37,879 nt of DNA, taken from assembly GCF_001194135.2 (NCBI RefSeq), contig NC_068989.1:83460613-83498491 (forward strand). The letters run 5' to 3'. This DNA is from Octopus bimaculoides (lineage: Eukaryota). Under the pieces are notes generated by a model. It saw nothing but the letters and a program-made list of their open reading frames with translations, had not been told where the DNA came from and did not search any database. The position numbers and the translations under genes were made by a program. The stretch's first letter is position 1, and the number at the start of each line of letters is the position of its first letter. Positions 2,511 through 32,819 of this stretch are shown piece after piece.

Positions 2511-2877
2511 TTGTTGGCACTCGAGGGTTCCAGTTGATCCGATCAACGGAACAGCCTGCTCGTGAAATTAACGTGCAAGTGGCTGAGCACTCCACAGACA
2601 CTTGTACCCTTAACGTAGTTCTCGGGGATATTCAGCGTGACACAGTGTGACAAGGCTGACCCTTTGAATTACAGGCACAACAGAAACAGGAAGTAAGAGT
2701 GAGAGAAAGTTGTAGTGAAAGAGTACAGCAGGGTTCACCACCATCCCCTGCCGGAACCTCGCGGAGCTTTAGGTGTTTGCACTCAATAAACACTCACAAC
2801 GCCCAGTATGGGAATCGAAACCGCGATCCTATGACCGCGAGCCCGCTGCCCTAACCACTGGGCCATTGCGCTTCCAC
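2511..2877 (-). mobile_element. tRNA-headed SINE, family C (near full length)
   Basis: Minus strand begins GTGGAAGCGCAATGGCCCAGTGGTTAGGG (A box) ... GGTTTCGATTCC (B box). The 3' ~150 nt (CTTGTCAC..CACGCTGAAT..CTACGTTAAG..GATCGGATCAACTGGAACCCTCG) recurs at 27375-27550 and 13905-14075. Confidence 0.9.
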
Positions 2878-3206
2878 GCTGCACAGTGTATAGTATATAT
2901 CTGTTCATTGGTACGCCGGTTAAAACAATATTTCAGTGGGAATGATTCTTGATAATTTTGTTCCAAATTTTGGCTTAGAGGAAAAGAAAAGCAAGAGGTA
3001 TCACAGATAGCTCCCGATAATATGATTCCGTTCACCAGTGCCTCGCAGCTTTGATCACCCAAGGAATGTTCGGCGTCTTTTACCCGACGCTTTAGCATAC
3101 AGTTTACCTCCATTAACTATTTAGCAATCAAACCAAACCCAGTGCTGGTGTAACTATTACAGGTTAAACCACATAAAATATGGAGTCTACTGAATCCTAC
3201 AGTAAC

Positions 3207-3239
<33 letters not shown>

Positions 3240-7270: not shown

Positions 7271-7518
7271 ATTTATTTATTTATTTATGTGTTTCAGCCA
7301 AGTGGCTGCGGTCATGCTGGTGCACCACCGTGATTTTCACGTTCCTTGCATGGCTCTTCTGCCCCACCCGACATGGTCCAATCAAGAGTTTTGATGGCAC
7401 ATCTGGTGTATAAGAGAATTTGACATAGCTGCCCTAAACTGCGTCTCATTACGAGCCATTGGTTCGTCTGGTATCGTGGAGAGGAAAGCGTCAAGTTTTG
7501 TCTTGAAGACCTCTACAT
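7271..7518 (-). mobile_element. 3' end of a CR1/L2-group-like LINE (ORF2 C-terminus, 3' UTR, (TAAA)n tail)
   Basis: Minus strand 7518-7382 encodes [46 protein letters not shown], the FKxxLDxFLxxIPDxP...RAAxSNSL pattern typical of non-LTR RT C-termini. It is followed by ~90 nt of UTR and ATAAATAAATAAAT. The clade assignment is from memory and tentative. Confidence 0.75.
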
Positions 7519-8125
7519 ATGTACATATATATATANNNNNNNNNNNNNNNNNNNNNNNNNNNNNNNNNNNNNNNNNNNNNNNNNNNNNNNNNNNNNNNNN
7601 NNNNNNNNNNNNNNNNNNNNNNNNNNNNNNNNNNNNNNNNNNNNNNNNNNNNNNNNNNNNNNNNNNNNNNNNNNNNNNNNNNNNNNNNNNNNNNNNNNNN
7701 NNNNNNNNNNNNNNNNNNNNNNNNNNNNNNNNNNNNNNNNNNNNNNNNNNNNNNNNNNNNNNNNNNNNNNNNNNNNNNNNNNNNNNNNNNNNNNNNNNNN
7801 NNNNNNNNNNNNNNNNNNNNNNNNNNNNNNNNNNNNNNNNNNNNNNNNNNNNNNNNNNNNNNNNNNNNNNNNNNNNNNNNNNNNNNNNNNNNNNNNNNNN
7901 NNNNNNNNNNNNNNNNNNNNNNNNNNNNNNNNNNNNNNNNNNNNNNNNNNNNNNNNNNNNNNNNNNNNNNNNNNNNNNNNNNNNNNNNNNNNNNNNNNNN
8001 NNNNNNNNNNNNNNNNNNNNNNNNNNNNNNNNNNNNNNNNNNNNNNNNNNNNNNNNNNNNNNNNNNNNNNNNNNNNNNNNNNNNNNNNNNNNNNNNNNNN
8101 NNNNNNNNNNNNNNNNNNNNNNNNN

Positions 8126-8313
8126 NTATATATATACATATGTACATATATATATATATATACATATGTACATATATATATATATATACATATGTACATA
8201 TATATATATACATATGTACATATATATATATATATATACATATGTACATATATATATATATATATATACATATGTACATATATATATATATATACATATG
8301 TACATATACTCAC

Positions 8314-13539: not shown

Positions 13540-13734
13540 GTGTCAATTTACAACAGCTGTTTCTAACGAGTTTTTAATCGATTAATAGAGACATTACATC
13601 ATTAGAAAAAAAAAACATTTTCCTCTGGTGAATATATGAACCACAACATTTCGATGTAAAATTTTTACCACACACGCAAAACCAAACATACATATATATA
13701 TAGCCATACAAAATCCGCGCCTGCTGGTTGGTGC

Positions 13735-14075
13735 AATATGGCTGAATGGTTTAGAAGTTCGTTTCGCAGCCGTGATGTACCATGTTCGATTCCAGTTCTT
13801 GGCAACTTGGACAAATATTTTCTATTGTTTCAGTTCGACTTATACCTTCAGTGATTTTAGGTAAGATGGAAACTGTAGTGAAGGTCATTCGAGAGATTGT
13901 ACTTGTAATTCAATAACTGCTACTTTGTCACACATACAGCGTCACGCTGATTCAACCTGAGATTTATTTTAAGAGTACCGATTACTTAGGAATACTCAGC
14001 GACGATTTAAATGTTAATTCAGCTTAACTAAGTTGATGAAACATCACAATCCTCATCGCCGAACGACGGAGATCC
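13735..14075 (+). mobile_element. Chimeric SINE: family B-like head and core with family C tail (old copy)
   Basis: A box TGGCTGAATGG, B box GTTCGATTCC, then TGGCAACTTGGACAAAT...GGAAACTG (B-like), then TTGTCACAC..GTCACGCTGA...GACGGAG (C tail). Confidence 0.7.
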
Positions 14076-15013: not shown

Positions 15014-15152
15014 TTTGGCACAAGCCCAGCGATGTCTGGTGTAGGAGTAAGTCGATTGCATTGACCCCAATGCTCAACAGGTACTCCTTTTATCGACCCT
15101 GAAAGGACGAAAAGCAAAGTCGACCTCGGTGGAATTTGAACTCTGAACGTAA
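15014..15152 (-). mobile_element. SINE family A, 5'-truncated
   Basis: TTTGGCACAAG...AGTCGATTGCATTGACCCCA...GCAAAGTCGACCTCGGTGGAATTTGAACTCTGAACGTAA. A short plus-strand family A tail fragment follows at ~15165-15218. Confidence 0.88.
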
Positions 15153-15363: not shown

Positions 15364-15542
15364 AGTTCTGTATTTGCGAGATGAGGAATTATGTACACAA
15401 TTTACATTTGACGGATATTTGTTCTCATCTTGTTTGTTGCTAACACAACGTTTCGGTTGATGTACTCTCCAGCCTTCATCAGGAGTCTTGGGGAAATTTC
15501 GAACCTGGGTTCTCATTCCTAATGTATTTTTCGATGTTATTA

Positions 15543-15578
<36 letters not shown>

Positions 15579-15583
15579 TCACT
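15364..15583 (-). mobile_element. SINE family E (hammerhead-bearing), left arm of inverted pair 1
   Basis: Reverse complement of 15604-15785. Near-identical to 29310-29516. Contains an internal (AAT)n. Confidence 0.92.
15442..15487 (-). ncRNA. Minimal type I hammerhead ribozyme motif
   Basis: GACUC-CUGAUGA-A-GGCUG-GAGAGUACAU-CAACC-GAAA-CGUU-GUGUU. The core is intact, with one mismatch each in stems I and II. Confidence 0.72.
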
Positions 15584-15785
15584 TTCCGAGTTCGATTGCA
15601 GGCAGTGAACTGAATAATAATAACAACAACAACAACATAGAAAAATACCTTAGGAATGAGAATCCAGTTCGAAATTTCGCCAAGACACCTGATGAAGACT
15701 GGAGAGTACATCAGCCGAAACGTTGTATTAACAACAAACAAGACGAGGACAAATATCCGTCAAATGTAAATAATGTAAATAATGT
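15584..15785 (+). mobile_element. SINE family E, right arm of inverted pair 1
   Basis: Starts at the B box (TTCCGAGTTCGATTGCAGGCAGTG), then (AAT/AAC)n, GAAAAATACCTTAGGAATGAG, the hammerhead motif, and GAGGACAAATATCCGTCAAATGTAAATAATGT. Confidence 0.92.
15684..15729 (+). ncRNA. Minimal type I hammerhead ribozyme motif
   Basis: GACAC-CUGAUGA-A-GACUG-GAGAGUACAU-CAGCC-GAAA-CGUU-GUAUU. The core is intact. Predicted cleavage is 3' of GUU (15724/15725). Confidence 0.72.
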
Positions 15786-16030
15786 GTAGTTTCTGTGCTA
15801 GTTTATAAATGGCTTACTTTGGGAAACGACAAACTTACATTTTCAACACATAATCAAGAAATCTGAGTCAGAAAATATTTTAAATCTAGGTAATCAGTTA
15901 AGCAACTGTTAATCTGGAAAAAACTTCTCACGCAGCCATTTTAGACAGATAACATCGTTTCACAAACTCACTGCTATACTGTGTGATGTGTCTCCACACT
16001 TAAATGTAACTCTTTCTGCTATATACCCAT

Positions 16031-16200
16031 GGCCTGCCTGAAATTTTGGAGGTAGGGGATAGTTGATTATATTAACCCCAGCATTTAACTGGTATTTAGT
16101 TTATTGAGCCTCAAAGGACGACAAGCAATGTCAGCGTAATTTGAACTCAAAACGTAAACACAGACATAATGCCACTAAGCACACTATTCTCACAGCTCGT
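16031..16200 (-). mobile_element. SINE family A, diverged copy
   Basis: TTGATTATATTAACCCCAGCATTTAACTGGTATTTAGTTTATTGAGCCTCAAAGGACG...AATTTGAACTCAAAACGTAAA. Confidence 0.75.
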
Positions 16201-18211: not shown

Positions 18212-18312
18212 AATAGTATAATTAATATACGATAGTAATAGAACAATGATATATGCGTGTTTCCGATGGCTTCGATGAACAAGTGTCCCAATTCCTCAAT
18301 CAGTTGAGCTAA

Positions 18313-18349
<37 letters not shown>

Positions 18350-19312
18350 NNNNNNNNNNNNNNNNNNNNNNNNNNNNNNNNNNNNNNNNNNNNNNNNNNN
18401 NNNNNNNNNNNNNNNNNNNNNNNNNNNNNNNNNNNNNNNNNNNNNNNNNNNNNNNNNNNNNNNNNNNNNNNNNNNNNNNNNNNNNNNNNNNNNNNNNNNN
18501 NNNNNNNNNNNNNNNNNNNNNNNNNNNNNNNNNNNNNNNNNNNNNNNNNNNNNNNNNNNNNNNNNNNNNNNNNNNNNNNNNNNNNNNNNNNNNNNNNNNN
18601 NNNNNNNNNNNNNNNNNNNNNNNNNNNNNNNNNNNNNNNNNNNNNNNNNNNNNNNNNNNNNNNNNNNNNNNNNNNNNNNNNNNNNNNNNNNNNNNNNNNN
18701 NNNNNNNNNNNNNNNNNNNNNNNNNNNNNNNNNNNNNNNNNNNNNNNNNNNNNNNNNNNNNNNNNNNTTTTGGGATAGTAATGTGGAAAACAATCTTGAA
18801 AGACATTTAAAGTCTTTGTTGGTTTCAGAATGGATTTTAGTGTAGCATGTTTACTTGTAATACTCTTCATCAGAAAAACAAATGCTACCGATTCTACCAG
18901 CTCGCCACCTTAACGATTACAACAGAAGTGCATTTGCAAGGACACAATATTAAAAATAAAAGCGAAAACAGAAACGGTTTATTTATAGGACACTTCCGTT
19001 CTTGAAATTATCTTCTCTTAATAAAAAATAGAAATCAAGCGATTGAAATGTCGAACGTTATATGTCATTAAAATGAAAAGAAAGAATGGAGGCAAAGGGA
19101 GATAAGTGCAGGAGTTAATCGAAATTTTTCATAATTGTTTGAAATGTTTGTTTTGTATTGTAAAAAAAAAAGAAAATGTTCAATAATTAGAGAATAAAGT
19201 ATTCGCTTATATCTTCGATAGCGCATCTCTCACGAGTCGATCTAAATGATTAGTCACCTCCCCCATACAGTTTCAAGCCTTGCAATTATTATTATTATTA
19301 TTATTATTATTA

Positions 19313-22387: not shown

Positions 22388-22863
22388 NNNNNNNNNNNNN
22401 NNNNNNNNNNNNNNNNNNNNNNNNNNNNNNNNNNNNNNNNNNNNNNNNNNNNNNNNNNNNNNNNNNNNNNNNNNNNNNNNNNNNNNNNNNNNNNNNNNNN
22501 NNNNNNNNNNNNNNNNNNNNNNNNNNNNNNNNNNNNNNNNNNNNNNNNNNNNNNNNNNNNNNNNNNNNNNNNNNNNNNNNNNNNNNNNNNNNNNNNNNNN
22601 NNNNNNNNNNNNNNNNNNNNNNNNNNNNNNNNNNNNNNNNNNNNNNNNNNNNNNNNNNNNNNNNNNNNNNNNNNNNNNNNNNNNNNNNNNNNNNNNNNNN
22701 NNNNNNNNNNNNNNNNNNNNNNNNNNNNNNNNNNNNNNNNNNNNNNNNNNNNTATATATCGCAACATTGTGGCTTTAGTTCACAAAGAGGTGAAGCGCTC
22801 TCTTTTGTTTCTTTTGCCAAATAAACACGGGCATTATAGTAGGTGCGTTTATTTACTCTCAAA

Positions 22864-27374: not shown

Positions 27375-27693
27375 TAGCACTCCGTCAATTACGACGACGA
27401 GTGTTCCACGTGATCCGATCAATGGAATAGCCTGCTCTTGAAATCAACGAGCAAATGGCTGAACACTCCACAAAGTACACTTAACGTAGTTTTCAGAGAG
27501 ACTAAGCATAACACAGAATGTGACAAGGCTGTCCCTTTAAATTACAGGCACAGCTCATTTTTGCTAGCTGAGTGGAGTGGAGCAATGTGAAATAAAGTGT
27601 CTTGCTCAAGGACATAAAGCGCCACCTGGAATCGAACTCACGACATAACGACCATGAACCGAATATCCTAGCCATTAAACCACGCGCTTTCAC
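27375..27693 (-). mobile_element. SINE family C variant (CORE-like centre), full length
   Basis: Head GTGAAAGCGCGTGGTTTAATGGCTAGG...GAGTTCGATTCCAGG, CORE-like GTCCTTGAGCAAGACACTT...CACTCAGCTAGC, tail shared with 2511-2670. Confidence 0.9.
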
Positions 27694-27723
27694 AATAAAA
27701 ATAGGGGGTAGACAGAATTAGGA

Positions 27724-29309: not shown

Positions 29310-29582
29310 AGTTCTATATTTAAGAGATGAGGAATTACGTACATTGTTTACATTTGACGGATATTTGTCCTCATCTTGTTTGTTGTTAACACAATGTTTC
29401 GACTGATTTACCCTCCGGCCTTCATCAGGCGTCTCGGGGAAACTTCCAACCTGGGTTCTCATTCCTAAGGTATTTTTCGATGTTATTATTATTATGATAT
29501 TATTATTCAGGTCACTGCCTGGAATCGAACTCGGAATTTTGGAGTTAGTAGCCCGCGCTTTTAACCACTACGCCATATACCC
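29310..29582 (-). mobile_element. SINE family E, full length (tRNA head, (AAT)n, hammerhead tail), left arm of inverted pair 2
   Basis: Minus strand GGGTATATGGCGTAGTGGTTAAAAGCGCGGGCTACTAACTCCAAAATTCCGAGTTCGATTCCAGGCAGTGACCTG has A box TGGCGTAGTGG and B box GTTCGATTCC, followed by the body. Confidence 0.93.
29388..29433 (-). ncRNA. Minimal type I hammerhead motif (stem III mutated)
   Basis: GACGC-CUGAUGA-A-GGCCG-GAGGGUAAAU-CAGUC-GAAA-CAUU-GUGUU. Confidence 0.62.
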
Positions 29583-29775
29583 ACCAACCCAAATATTCCG
29601 ATTCCAGGTAGTGACCTGAATAATAATAATATCGAAAAATACCTTAGGAATGAGAAGCCAGGTTCGAAATTTCCCCAAGACACTTAATGAAGGCTGAAGG
29701 GTATATCAGCCGAAACATCGTGTTAACAACCAACAAGATGAGGACAAATATCCGTCAAATGCAAATAATATACAC
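29583..29775 (+). mobile_element. SINE family E, right arm of inverted pair 2
   Basis: Begins in the anticodon-arm region (ACCAACCCAAATATTCCG) directly against the 5' end of the left arm. The remainder matches 15604-15785. Confidence 0.92.
29679..29724 (+). ncRNA. Hammerhead motif, catalytic core mutated (likely inactive)
   Basis: GACAC-UUAAUGA-A-GGCUG-AAGGGUAUAU-CAGCC-GAAA-CAUC-GUGUU. Stems I and II are fully paired; core substitutions C3U and G5A. Confidence 0.6.
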
Positions 29776-29879
29776 ATGTGATGTGTTTCTGTGCAGATGC
29801 TTGTATCTGCACGTATATGTGTGTATGTCTTGTGTGAATATATACATACATACATACATACATACATACATACATACAC

Positions 29880-31095: not shown

Positions 31096-32819
31096 ATAAC
31101 ACTAACATAACACTTCCATATAAAATATCTACATACCATCTACATAACAAAGCTAAGTAATACGTCTACGATGCAAAACACGTCTATGTAACACACCAAA
31201 GCAACACAATAACGCAACACATTAACACTGCACACTAACATAATATGACCCAGCAATACAGCACACACCAACAATGCGTGTGCATACATACACATACACA
31301 GATACGAGCAAAACCCAACTCCCAACCATCACATCATCTCTCTTCACAGACATAATTAGATAAACACGAATCACATGAAATATCATTCCCCTATTCCCAT
31401 CATTCCCAACATACAGACAAGGTGTGTGAATGAGTGTGTGTACGTGTGCATGCTTGAGTATGTATATATATCTAGATGTACATGAAACTATATATATATA
31501 NNNNNNNNNNNNNNNNNNNNNNNNNNNNNNNNNNNNNNNNNNNNNNNNNNNNNNNNNNNNNNNNNNNNNNNNNNNNNNNNNNNNNNNNNNNNNNNNNNNN
31601 NNNNNNNNNNNNNNNNNNNNNNNNNNNNNNNNNNNNNNNNNNNNNNNNNNNNNNNNNNNNNNNNNNNNNNNNNNNNNNNNNNNNNNNNNNNNNNNNNNNN
31701 NNNNNNNNNNNNNNNNNNNNNNNNNNNNNNNNNNNNNNNNNNNNNNNNNNNNNNNNNNNNNNNNNNNNNNNNNNNNNNNNNNNNNNNNNNNNNNNNNNNN
31801 NNNNNNNNNNNNNNNNNNNNNNNNNNNNNNNNNNNNNNNNNNNNNNNNNNNNNNNNNNNNNNNNNNNNNNNNNNNNNNNNNNNNNNNNNNNNNNNNNNNN
31901 NNNNNNNNNNNNNNNNNNNNNNNNNNNNNNNNNNNNNNNNNNNNNNNNNNNNNNNNNNNNNNNNNNNNNNNNNNNNNNNNNNNNNNNNNNNNNNNNNNNN
32001 NNNNNNNNNNNNNNNNNNNNNNNNNNNNNATATATATATATATATATAGAATAATTTGAAGGTATGTATGGATGAATATATTTCAATATATATACGCAAT
32101 TACATATGTGTGTATGTCTGATTGCAAATTTAGATAGGAAGAGGCCAGACATAACTACAAAGACACAGATCTAAAAGAAAGACAGAACACTTCAGCTTCA
32201 GGACATCATCTTTACACTCTCTACACACAATGTTGACGTCACTTCCTGTGCACTGTAAATGGCGTCCTCAGTTTGGTTTCGGGGGAAGATAATTGTAGTT
32301 AAGGTATTTTTTGTTGTTGCTGGTGGTGGTAGTGGTGGTTATTGTGTCGTTGTTATTGTTATTCGAGGTGAAGGTGGTGGCGATTGCGTAAGAATAGTAG
32401 CGGTGGATGGTGTGGTGGTTCTTATGGTGCCAATAATAGTGTTGGTAGTGATGGTAGTGATGTAGGTTATTATTAATGATTTTAATAGTGGAGTGGTAGT
32501 GTCGATTGTAATATTGGTAGTGGCAGAGGTGTGGATAATCGTACTGGTTGAATTGTGGTGATGAAGGATATACTGATAATAGTAGTAAGCAGTAACAGCG
32601 TTGGGGTGGGTAGATTAGTTGCGGTATTCAAGGGTGGCATTGCTATTGAAATGTAGAGGAAATTTCACGCTGTTGTTGTTATTGTTTATATCACTGCTGT
32701 TGTTTTTGTTGTGTTACCGGATCACATCGAACTGGCATGCAGCGATCAATATAAGACAATCAATATTTAGATAACATGGATTTGAAACATTTGCTTGTCG
32801 CTGAATATCTGTGTTCCAG

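Follow-up and report, generated by a model that had tools for sequence, protein, structure and literature searches.

Short interspersed elements (SINEs) are known from the textbooks as parasites of long interspersed elements (LINEs). The cephalopod SINEs OK, OR1, OR2 and the Ceph-SINEs have tails derived from LINEs or from simple repeats and insert singly, and to our knowledge no ribozyme has been reported in any of them. Here we describe a SINE family of Octopus bimaculoides, named family E, four copies of which lie in a stretch of 37,879 nucleotides (nt) of contig NC_068989.1 (positions 83,460,613 to 83,498,491 of assembly GCF_001194135.2; hereafter the window, numbered from its first letter). 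The cephalopod SINEs named above, which occur at high copy number in octopus, resemble family E in their modular build and in a tRNA-derived head with A and B boxes, and family E is set apart from OK and the OR SINEs here by their descriptions rather than by their consensus sequences. In family E, the 3' module contains the motif of a minimal hammerhead ribozyme, and the copies carry insertion scars of the kind left by Penelope-like elements (PLEs), by whose machinery they were probably copied.

The closest precedent for family E is found in the schistosome families Sm-alpha and Sj-alpha. These are likewise short, high-copy, tRNA-derived retroposons (Sm-alpha from tRNA-Gln) with a type I hammerhead in each unit (PMC2770079). 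Their hammerhead, however, is the canonical one, in which helix III is short and the loops contact each other, and Rfam-based searches detect it, whereas that of family E is a loopless minimal form that Rfam misses; their hosts also belong to another phylum, and the likeness is drawn from their descriptions. Head-to-head pairs and tail scars of the PLE type are not among the features described for Sm-alpha in the parts of that paper considered here (PMC2770079). A further comparison is offered by the metazoan retrozymes that lack long terminal repeats (non-LTR retrozymes; Cervera and de la Pena 2020; Li et al. 2026, preprint), which, like family E, are non-coding, carry hammerheads and have been proposed as non-autonomous partners of PLEs. 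Retrozymes are built of tandem units of 150–300 nt with classical type I hammerheads, reportedly lack promoters and form circular RNA, whereas family E is dispersed, has a head of the RNA polymerase III (Pol III) type and shows linear 5' truncation; the tandem arrays found among its relatives (see below) are a likeness.

The PLEs themselves share both the ribozyme architecture and the insertion pattern of family E. In their minimal hammerheads, A9 is followed by one extra nucleotide, a G10.1-C11.1 pair is present and positions 15.2-16.2 are palindromic (Cervera and de la Pena 2014, PMC4209133), and the hammerheads of PLE pseudo-LTRs agree with that of family E in all of these and in a short helix I, while helix II has 6 pairs in family E and 7–8 in schistosome PLEs. 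PLE insertions often have an inverted, 5'-truncated copy at their 5' end and a tail of 30–40 bp (31 bp in a rotifer) at one end only, and they form partial tandems (Craig 2021, PMC8557442; Arkhipova 2013, PMC3846280). An inverted truncated copy joined head to head and an optional tail are also the scars of family E, and tandem units occur in its relatives. When a PLE protein was purified, it nicked the two strands of DNA and extended both, and its reverse transcription began from two internal sites, of which one lies 85–92 nt downstream of the hammerhead cut, the tail being what lies between them; the hammerhead cleavage is protein-assisted and, in vitro, dispensable for insertion (Frangieh 2024, PMC11167929). 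The corresponding distance in family E is 84 nt. Unlike a PLE, family E has no frame for a reverse transcriptase (RT) or GIY-YIG endonuclease and no sequence match to a known PLE, and a tRNA-like head replaces the PLE body. Active Penelope families are present in octopus genomes (PMC13282606).

The first-pass annotation of the window had placed a single tRNA-headed SINE at 15442–15729. This interval proved instead to consist of parts of two inverted copies and the junction between them, and it runs from the outer end of a minus-strand hammerhead-like motif to the outer end of a plus-strand one. Comparison of the window with itself showed that the four family E copies make up two independent head-to-head pairs, 15364–15798 (locus 1, arms A and B) and 29310–29794 (locus 2, arms C and D). 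Outside 15364/15798 and 29310/29794, where the homology between the loci ends, their flanks are unrelated. The features of the two loci are as follows (coordinates, strand, description).

15364–15798, no strand: locus 1, two 5'-truncated copies joined head to head (arms A and B), with the junction at 15583/15584
15364–15583, minus: arm A, 5'-truncated at consensus ~74, starting with AGTGACCTGAA, without a tRNA-like head and with a long 3' tail (from the alignment and the end sequences)
15442–15487, minus: hammerhead motif of arm A, core intact, a single mismatch each in helices I and II
15364–15393, minus: long tail of arm A, CATAATTCCTCATCTCGCAAATACAGAACT, missing from arm B and homologous to the tails of four relatives treated below (L054, L055, L056 and L057)
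15584–15798, plus: arm B, 5'-truncated at consensus ~54, with a B-box remnant at 15589–15599 and a short 3' end followed by a 15-nt extension
15684–15729, plus: hammerhead motif of arm B, core intact, a single mismatch each in helices I and II
15784–15798, plus: terminal extension of arm B, GTGTAGTTTCTGTGC, unexplained, present on arm D as well and similar to the distal long tail when this is reverse-complemented
29310–29794, no strand: locus 2, a head-to-head composite of the full-length arm C and the 5'-truncated arm D (from the inverted repeats)
29310–29589, minus: arm C, a full-length family E SINE of ~280 nt, with tRNA-like head, (AAT)n linker, hammerhead module and long tail
29521–29575, minus: tRNA-like Pol III promoter region of arm C, with the A box TGGCGTAGTGG at 29565–29575 and the B box AGTTCGATTCC at 29521–29531
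29388–29433, minus: hammerhead motif of arm C, core intact, with a mismatch in helix II and a C-A mismatch in helix III (CpG decay)
29310–29339, minus: long tail of arm C, CGTAATTCCTCATCTCTTAAATATAGAACT, also encoded in the annotated protein P0001 (..NSSSLKYRTI), treated below
29590–29794, plus: arm D, 5'-truncated at consensus ~48, with a small deletion in the B box and a short 3' end followed by an extension at 29778–29794
29679–29724, plus: hammerhead motif of arm D, core broken, UUAAUGA (C3U, G5A)

The inverted repeat of locus 1 spans 15388–15504 and 15667–15783 and is 91% complementary, and locus 2 contains the inverted repeats 29339–29493/29619–29773 and 29498–29527/29599–29628. No further genuine long inverted repeat was found in the window, the remainder being N runs and simple repeats. 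In both loci the arms abut without a spacer, and they do so at differing 5' truncation points (consensus ~74/54 in locus 1 and 1/48 in locus 2). Pairwise identity among the four arms is 87–91% and most of the changes are private, which fits old insertions from near-identical sources; three substituted sites are common to the arms within a locus, and none is common across loci outside the tail region. As an RNA, the locus 1 composite folds with an energy of −236 kcal/mol (z = −27) and is a potential long double-stranded RNA. At E≤10, the only Rfam matches were at 15478–15691 and 29435–29677, which were labeled as plant microRNA precursor families (MIR7996, MIR2606, MIR7533), an artefact caused by the ~190-bp palindrome arms.

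As the first-pass annotation had reported, a 46-nt hammerhead-like motif occupies the same place in the four homologous copies (15442–15487 and 29388–29433 on the minus strand, 15684–15729 and 29679–29724 on the plus strand). The majority consensus of the four is GACAC-CUGAUGA-A-GGCUGG-AGGGUACA-UCAGCC-GAAA-CGUU-GUGUU, in which the middle part, AGGGUACA, has 8 nt. It has a helix I of 5 pairs, a helix II of 6 pairs, an intact core and a GUU cleavage site, and the features published for the PLE-type minimal form, namely the extra nucleotide after A9, the G10.1-C11.1 pair and a loopless palindromic helix III (AACGUU), are all present. The consensus passes a strict descriptor of minimal hammerheads, and no motif was found in 300 shuffles of the window, even when one mismatch per helix was allowed. 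Each copy has substitutions of its own, again as previously noted: arms A and B have one mismatch in each of helices I and II, arm C is affected in helices II and III, and arm D has a dead core. The further claim that the consensus repairs all of these defects holds with the exception of one 2:2 tie, between G and A at position 16.2. This position is a CpG site, of which CG is the commonest state (8 of 14 copies). The core CUGANGA...GAAA with a cleavable H17 is present in the consensus and in arms A, B and C, and absent from arm D; it is also intact in three of the relatives (L042, both copies of L055, and L057). Among the 14 DNA copies that could be aligned, the extra A after A9 is present in all and the G-C at columns 14/33 in 13, while the palindrome 15.2-16.2 is C-G in arms A and B and in 8 of the 14 overall, the other copies having CpG-decay variants (CA, TG). 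The hammerhead was probably intact in the master copies.

A full family E unit has ~275–280 nt; it begins with the head, in which the A and B boxes lie, continues with an (AAT)n linker and closes with a 3' module of ~150 nt, the latter made up of ~20 nt before the hammerhead, the 46-nt minimal type I hammerhead and an 84-nt tail. Among the four window copies the complete head with both boxes is found only in arm C, the others being too short. On the minus strand of this arm, the B box is followed by CAGGCAGTGACC and then by the (AAT)n linker, and a body of ~65 nt, ATCGAAAAATACCTTAGGAATGAGAACCCAGGTTCGAAATTTCCCCAA, precedes the 46-nt motif. The two boxes start 44 nt apart in arm C, and their joint pattern had one match in the window and none in 100 shuffles. 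The earlier description of a Pol III SINE with A and B boxes stands insofar as family E is a short non-coding retroposon whose boxes, in arm C, are at tRNA spacing, but the head does not lie in the interval that had been flagged, which retains only the B-box remnant at 15589–15599 and no full tRNA-like head. As far as its sequence goes, the head is best described as tRNA-like with A and B boxes, and no further. The sense strand of the consensus has no run of four T (T4) and the antisense strand has three; the absence on the sense strand is compatible with Pol III read-through and is not significant alone.

Head and hammerhead module are connected, in all copies as well as in the relatives from Logan contigs, by an (AAT)n/(AAC)n microsatellite of variable length (in the window at 15535–15572, 15613–15637, 29484–29507 and 29619–29631). 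The contigs of the relatives often break at this linker, and those of L040, L041 and L046 do so at contig ends. PLEs have been reported to prefer microsatellites and to gain (AAT)n/(AAC)n through template jumps.

Two kinds of 3' end were observed in the window. Arms A and C end in ...AATGTACATAAT-TCCTCATCTC..AAATA.AGAACT, 84 nt past the cleavage site, and arms B and D stop at ...AATGTACA(TAAT), 52–59 nt past it. The long arms exceed the short ones by 25–31 nt, and this extra tail is slightly under the published 30–40-bp range of PLEs. The piece at the end of arms B and D resembles the reverse complement of the distal tail, with the result that the extremes of each composite carry a short direct repeat, AGTTCTGTATTTGC ... 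TAGTTTCTGTGC (15364–15377/15787–15798 and 29310–29323/29783–29794). This terminal repeat is more alike between the loci than within them and so is no simple target-site duplication; a search of the window for an empty-site copy of it gave none.

Family E therefore agrees with the PLEs on four points: the head-to-head arrangement, the variable 5' truncation, the 3' ends 25–31 nt apart, and the long end 84 nt past the cut. The head-to-head order holds for both window loci and was also seen in the relatives L042, L050, L054 and L056. This anatomy and these scars are read directly from the DNA. The derivation of the 3' module from a PLE rather than from a LINE, as the first-pass annotation had it, is supported by the match between the insertion scars and the PLE signatures, but no PLE with RT and GIY-YIG domains that shares the module was found by the searches described below. 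Taking the evidence together, we consider it probable that family E is an old octopus SINE family with a tRNA-like head that was copied by PLE machinery recognizing the hammerhead-plus-tail module.

We infer that Pol III would transcribe the SINE from its head, and that the enzyme in question would be a PLE RT/GIY-YIG protein that recognizes the hammerhead-plus-tail module in the transcript. This protein would nick both target strands, and complementary DNA (cDNA) would be primed at either 52–59 nt or 84 nt downstream of the cleavage site. Two cDNAs would then grow toward each other and be joined at their variably truncated 5' ends, the expected outcome being a head-to-head pair with the extra ~25–31-nt tail on one arm only. 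Any ribozyme activity is likewise a prediction. Since cleavage of a monomeric SINE RNA would part the head from the priming region, and since no copy was found with its 5' end at the hammerhead cleavage site, cleavage is unlikely to take part in propagation. The hammerhead would most likely act within a fold recognized by the protein, or as a predicted protein-assisted or dimer-dependent ribozyme.

Read on its sense strand, the 3' module forms an open reading frame (ORF), the translation of which was used as a handle in searching for relatives beyond the window. A word-index search with the sense-frame peptide returned only P0001, a 'protein' of 51 amino acids (aa) annotated in Octopus bimaculoides, which ends in ...NSSSLKYRTI, encodes the long tail and represents a fifth copy. 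A word-index profile search returned 8 proteins, and a word-index search with the frame starting at the AUG inside CUGAUGA returned nothing. A HMMER profile made from the peptides of arms A and C and P0001 was scored against 1.84 billion representative proteins and gave 100 matches, ~98 of them real, which are short spurious ORFs in several subfamilies; the matches P0017 and P0053 are unrelated proteins and were discarded. In the relatives, P-[D/E]-E-G encodes C-CUGANGA-A-GG and P-K-R-C encodes CC-GAAA-CGUU-GU, and the five-residue spacing between these core halves is invariant in 65 translated instances. Many of the translated matches hold two or three tandem units of 43 residues. The antisense-then-sense order of modules, that is, head-to-head, was observed within one ORF in 11 of the 98, and the opposite, tail-to-tail order in none. 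At the nucleotide level, an exact scan of metagenome contigs with a 34-mer gave nothing, and an invariant 18-mer gave 18 matches in metagenome contigs and 20 in bacterial genomes, all of them chance matches of ~20–27 nt.

The DNA of ten relatives was fetched, from the Logan contigs SRR11869384-94 (one sequencing project) and the ENA contigs ERZ21867824. The Logan contigs are 70–81% identical to family E. L042 is head-to-head, with the family E head conserved on both arms, and its hammerhead is intact, having the stem II GGGUG/CGCCC with compensatory changes; L050 and L054 are likewise head-to-head, and L039 is apparently solo. L055 contains two solo SINEs with a different tRNA-like head (TGGCGTAACGG ... 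GGTTCGATTCT) and the 84-nt tail. Its motif is perfect (ACAC-CUGAAGA-A-GGCCGG-(8)-UCGGCC-GAAA-CGUU-GUGG), and its plus-strand copy at 2850–3214 has a 13-nt target-site duplication directly at both ends. L056 (10154–10511) is a partial tandem of 129-nt units, with an inverted, 5'-truncated unit joined at a GGCC microhomology, and L057 (10120–10529) is a tandem of 114-nt units with a perfect motif, the internal units of which stop at the short end while only the last one carries a 31-nt tail, TATAATCAAACCTCATCTCATAGATTCAGAA, homologous to that of family E.

The whole module, from just before helix I to the end of the tail, aligns across the octopus, Logan and ENA sequences, and the module of the relatives also gives direct BLAST matches to the window. 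On these alignments, the 3' module of family E is a copy of a conserved unit of ~114–129 nt that occurs in other animals behind other tRNA-like heads or in partial tandem arrays accompanied by inverted truncated copies. The association of different heads with the same module, as is the case for the LINE-derived tails of ordinary SINEs, supports the module as the part that is recognized. The ~20 nt before helix I of family E (GAAATTTCCCCAAGACAC; 15640–15683 and 29434–29476) resemble the junction between units in L057, as well as the tail end plus unit start of L056, and from this likeness to tandem junctions the family E module looks as if it had been captured from a tandem. The tandem units of L056 (129 nt) and L057 (114 nt) are both multiples of three, and the sense frame is open through the arrays and through the ~98 representatives; this may reflect the selection bias of a protein database, or the arrays may preserve, as a relic, the beginning of a PLE reading frame.

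The pairing of the motif could be followed in the 14 DNA hammerheads, where 82% of the cells are paired, as against 14–46% when the partners are slid. Ten cells have double changes, a number reached by 6 of 500 shuffles, and the covariation score was reached by 7 of 500; both measures can be inflated by relatedness among the copies. In these copies, pair 17-30 is U-A in 6 and C-G in 5, pair 16-31 occurs as C-G, G-C and U-A, and pair 3-44 as C-G and U-A. The 10 decayed DNA copies showed no excess of covariation over shuffles. At the peptide level, pair 2.3/1.3 covaries (C-G in 58, U-A in 6, U-G in 1, mismatch in 2).

A number of observations weigh against copying by a PLE, or against parts of the anatomy on which that reading is built. 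No PLE coding sequence sharing the module was found in the two word-index searches or the HMMER scan, octopus assemblies and Repbase lying outside their scope, and no long RT protein was among the HMMER matches. Nor was a remnant of the PLE endonuclease found in the window with a PLE GIY-YIG probe. The one RT gene encountered near a relative, at 3162–5246 of L056 (an ORF of 694 aa, 4.4 kb from the array), belongs to a LINE with apurinic (AP) endonuclease and RT and not to a PLE, and is probably unrelated to the hammerhead array. None of the four window copies has an intact ribozyme or passes the strict descriptor, and the hammerhead covariance scan with Rfam produced no match at the gathering threshold or at E≤10. 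A double-hammerhead dimer has a nearest-neighbor energy of −22.3 kcal/mol, no better than two monomers. The covariation described above is modest and partly explicable by relatedness, and support for conservation of the fold is moderate and short of proof. As for the head, only one of the four window copies keeps it, and it was not called as a tRNA by ARAGORN at default thresholds, in the window or in the relatives, or by Rfam at E≤10; a poor cloverleaf was obtained for arm C with ARAGORN only at the 60% threshold. Finally, no convincing target-site duplication flanks either composite in the window, and the 15–17-nt end piece shared by arms B and D, GTG.T.GTTTCTGTGC, is unexplained.

The silence of Rfam carries no weight for the minimal form, because its hammerhead and tRNA models also miss the perfect motif and the head of L055 (2840–3230, E≤10). 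This class of hammerhead and SINE will escape genome annotation that relies on Rfam.

Of the other explanations, the one that survives best is that family E is an ordinary LINE-dependent tRNA SINE, its 3' tail being recognized by an octopus LINE (such as RTE, CR1 or Dong-R4), its hammerhead being a passenger relic and its pairs the result of chance or local rearrangement. We regard it as unlikely. LINEs and SINEs are indeed the most abundant transposons of octopus (PMC13282606), a LINE lies 4.4 kb from the L056 array, and no PLE partner was found. Family E, however, has no poly(A) or simple-repeat 3' end, and pairing by accident would have to account for head-to-head order in 11 of the 98 translated relatives, in at least three loci from Logan and in the two loci of the window, with tail-to-tail order in none. 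Twin priming of the L1 type, in which an inverted 5' segment is joined to the 3' segment of one element, would not leave a pair of 3' ends that are both complete and point outward. The tandem arrays, and the presence of two discrete 3' ends ~25–31 nt apart, fit PLEs and not LINEs.

Quite unlikely is an origin of the retrozyme type, by which tandem transcripts would be cut by dimeric hammerheads, closed into circles by tRNA ligase and reverse-transcribed by rolling circle, the head being incidental. The arrays of 114–129-nt units among the relatives, with a hammerhead in each, speak for it, and metazoan non-LTR retrozymes proposed to depend on PLEs are known. In the window, however, there is no direct tandem of units, and the partial tandems of PLE insertions are accordingly not represented there either; nor does any copy begin at the cleavage site. 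The copies start at the head or at a variable truncation point, and their other ends fall at two fixed positions, a pattern that points to linear templates with priming at the tail. The head is, moreover, conserved in a second subfamily (L042), whereas published retrozymes are said to lack promoters.

A further idea is that the palindrome is itself mobile, as a foldback transposon or one resembling a miniature inverted-repeat transposable element (MITE), with the central differences between the loci arising as later deletions. The whole composite, asymmetric ends included, is common to the two loci, and long palindromes are prone to central deletion. We nevertheless hold this to be very unlikely, given that the inverted repeat falls short of the ends by 24 and 15 nt and the outermost sequences repeat in direct and not in inverted orientation, that there is no TA or fixed-length target-site duplication, that a Pol III promoter-like head lies at the center, and that the relatives include solo copies (one with the 13-nt duplication), tandem arrays and other truncation points. 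Least probable of all is that the hammerhead likeness arose by chance in a four-copy consensus, as the failure of each single window copy under the strict descriptor and the Rfam result might suggest, a reading effectively refuted by the relatives, in which perfect (L055, L057) or compensated intact (L042) motifs stand at the same place independently, and contradicted also by the empty shuffles and the invariant spacing of the core halves.

The searchable literature yielded no account of a tRNA-headed SINE whose tail is of the PLE type, and none of hammerheads in cephalopods. Tentatively, we raise the possibility that family E belongs to an unnamed and widespread class of Pol III-driven SINEs that parasitize PLEs and not LINEs and are born head-to-head, and that such SINEs account for many dispersed minimal hammerheads, these being their 3' modules. 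Minimal hammerheads lying dispersed and single have been reported by the thousand from animal genomes and loosely ascribed to truncated PLEs (Cervera and de la Pena 2014, PMC4209133), and SINEs like family E would be a possible explanation for many of these 'orphans'.

If copying by PLEs is correct, the PLE protein would recognize the RNA of the hammerhead together with its 84-nt tail, and a SINE whose tail and scars point to PLEs would add a second kind of partnership to the one known for SINEs. The conservation of the ~130-nt module across subfamilies marks it as the candidate recognition element, and family E would offer a short, natural, Pol III-expressed substrate for studying how a PLE chooses its RNA and where it starts copying. 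Priming on both strands would also mean that the SINEs are born as pairs folding into ~190-bp double-stranded RNA, and inverted pairs made at birth in the PLE manner would give such SINEs an inherent supply of long hairpin RNA. Heavy RNA editing is a known trait of cephalopods; a link between this and hairpin SINEs is speculative.

The window contains many N runs that adjoin (TA)n/(CA)n repeats (for example, at 7514–8152, 18300–18800, 22400–22750 and 31500–32050), and comes from a gapped draft assembly in which some repeat copies may be missing or collapsed. Other SINE-like repeats are also present, at 27380–27695 (minus), 13725–13800 (plus), 15041–15152 and 16052–16157. They comprise a family of ~310 nt with a tRNA-like head, GCGCGTGGTTTAATGGCTAGG...GAGTTCGATTCCAGG, another tRNA-like head that begins with GGTTGGTG, as does that of family E, and a third repeat that flanks locus 1 on both sides in direct orientation.

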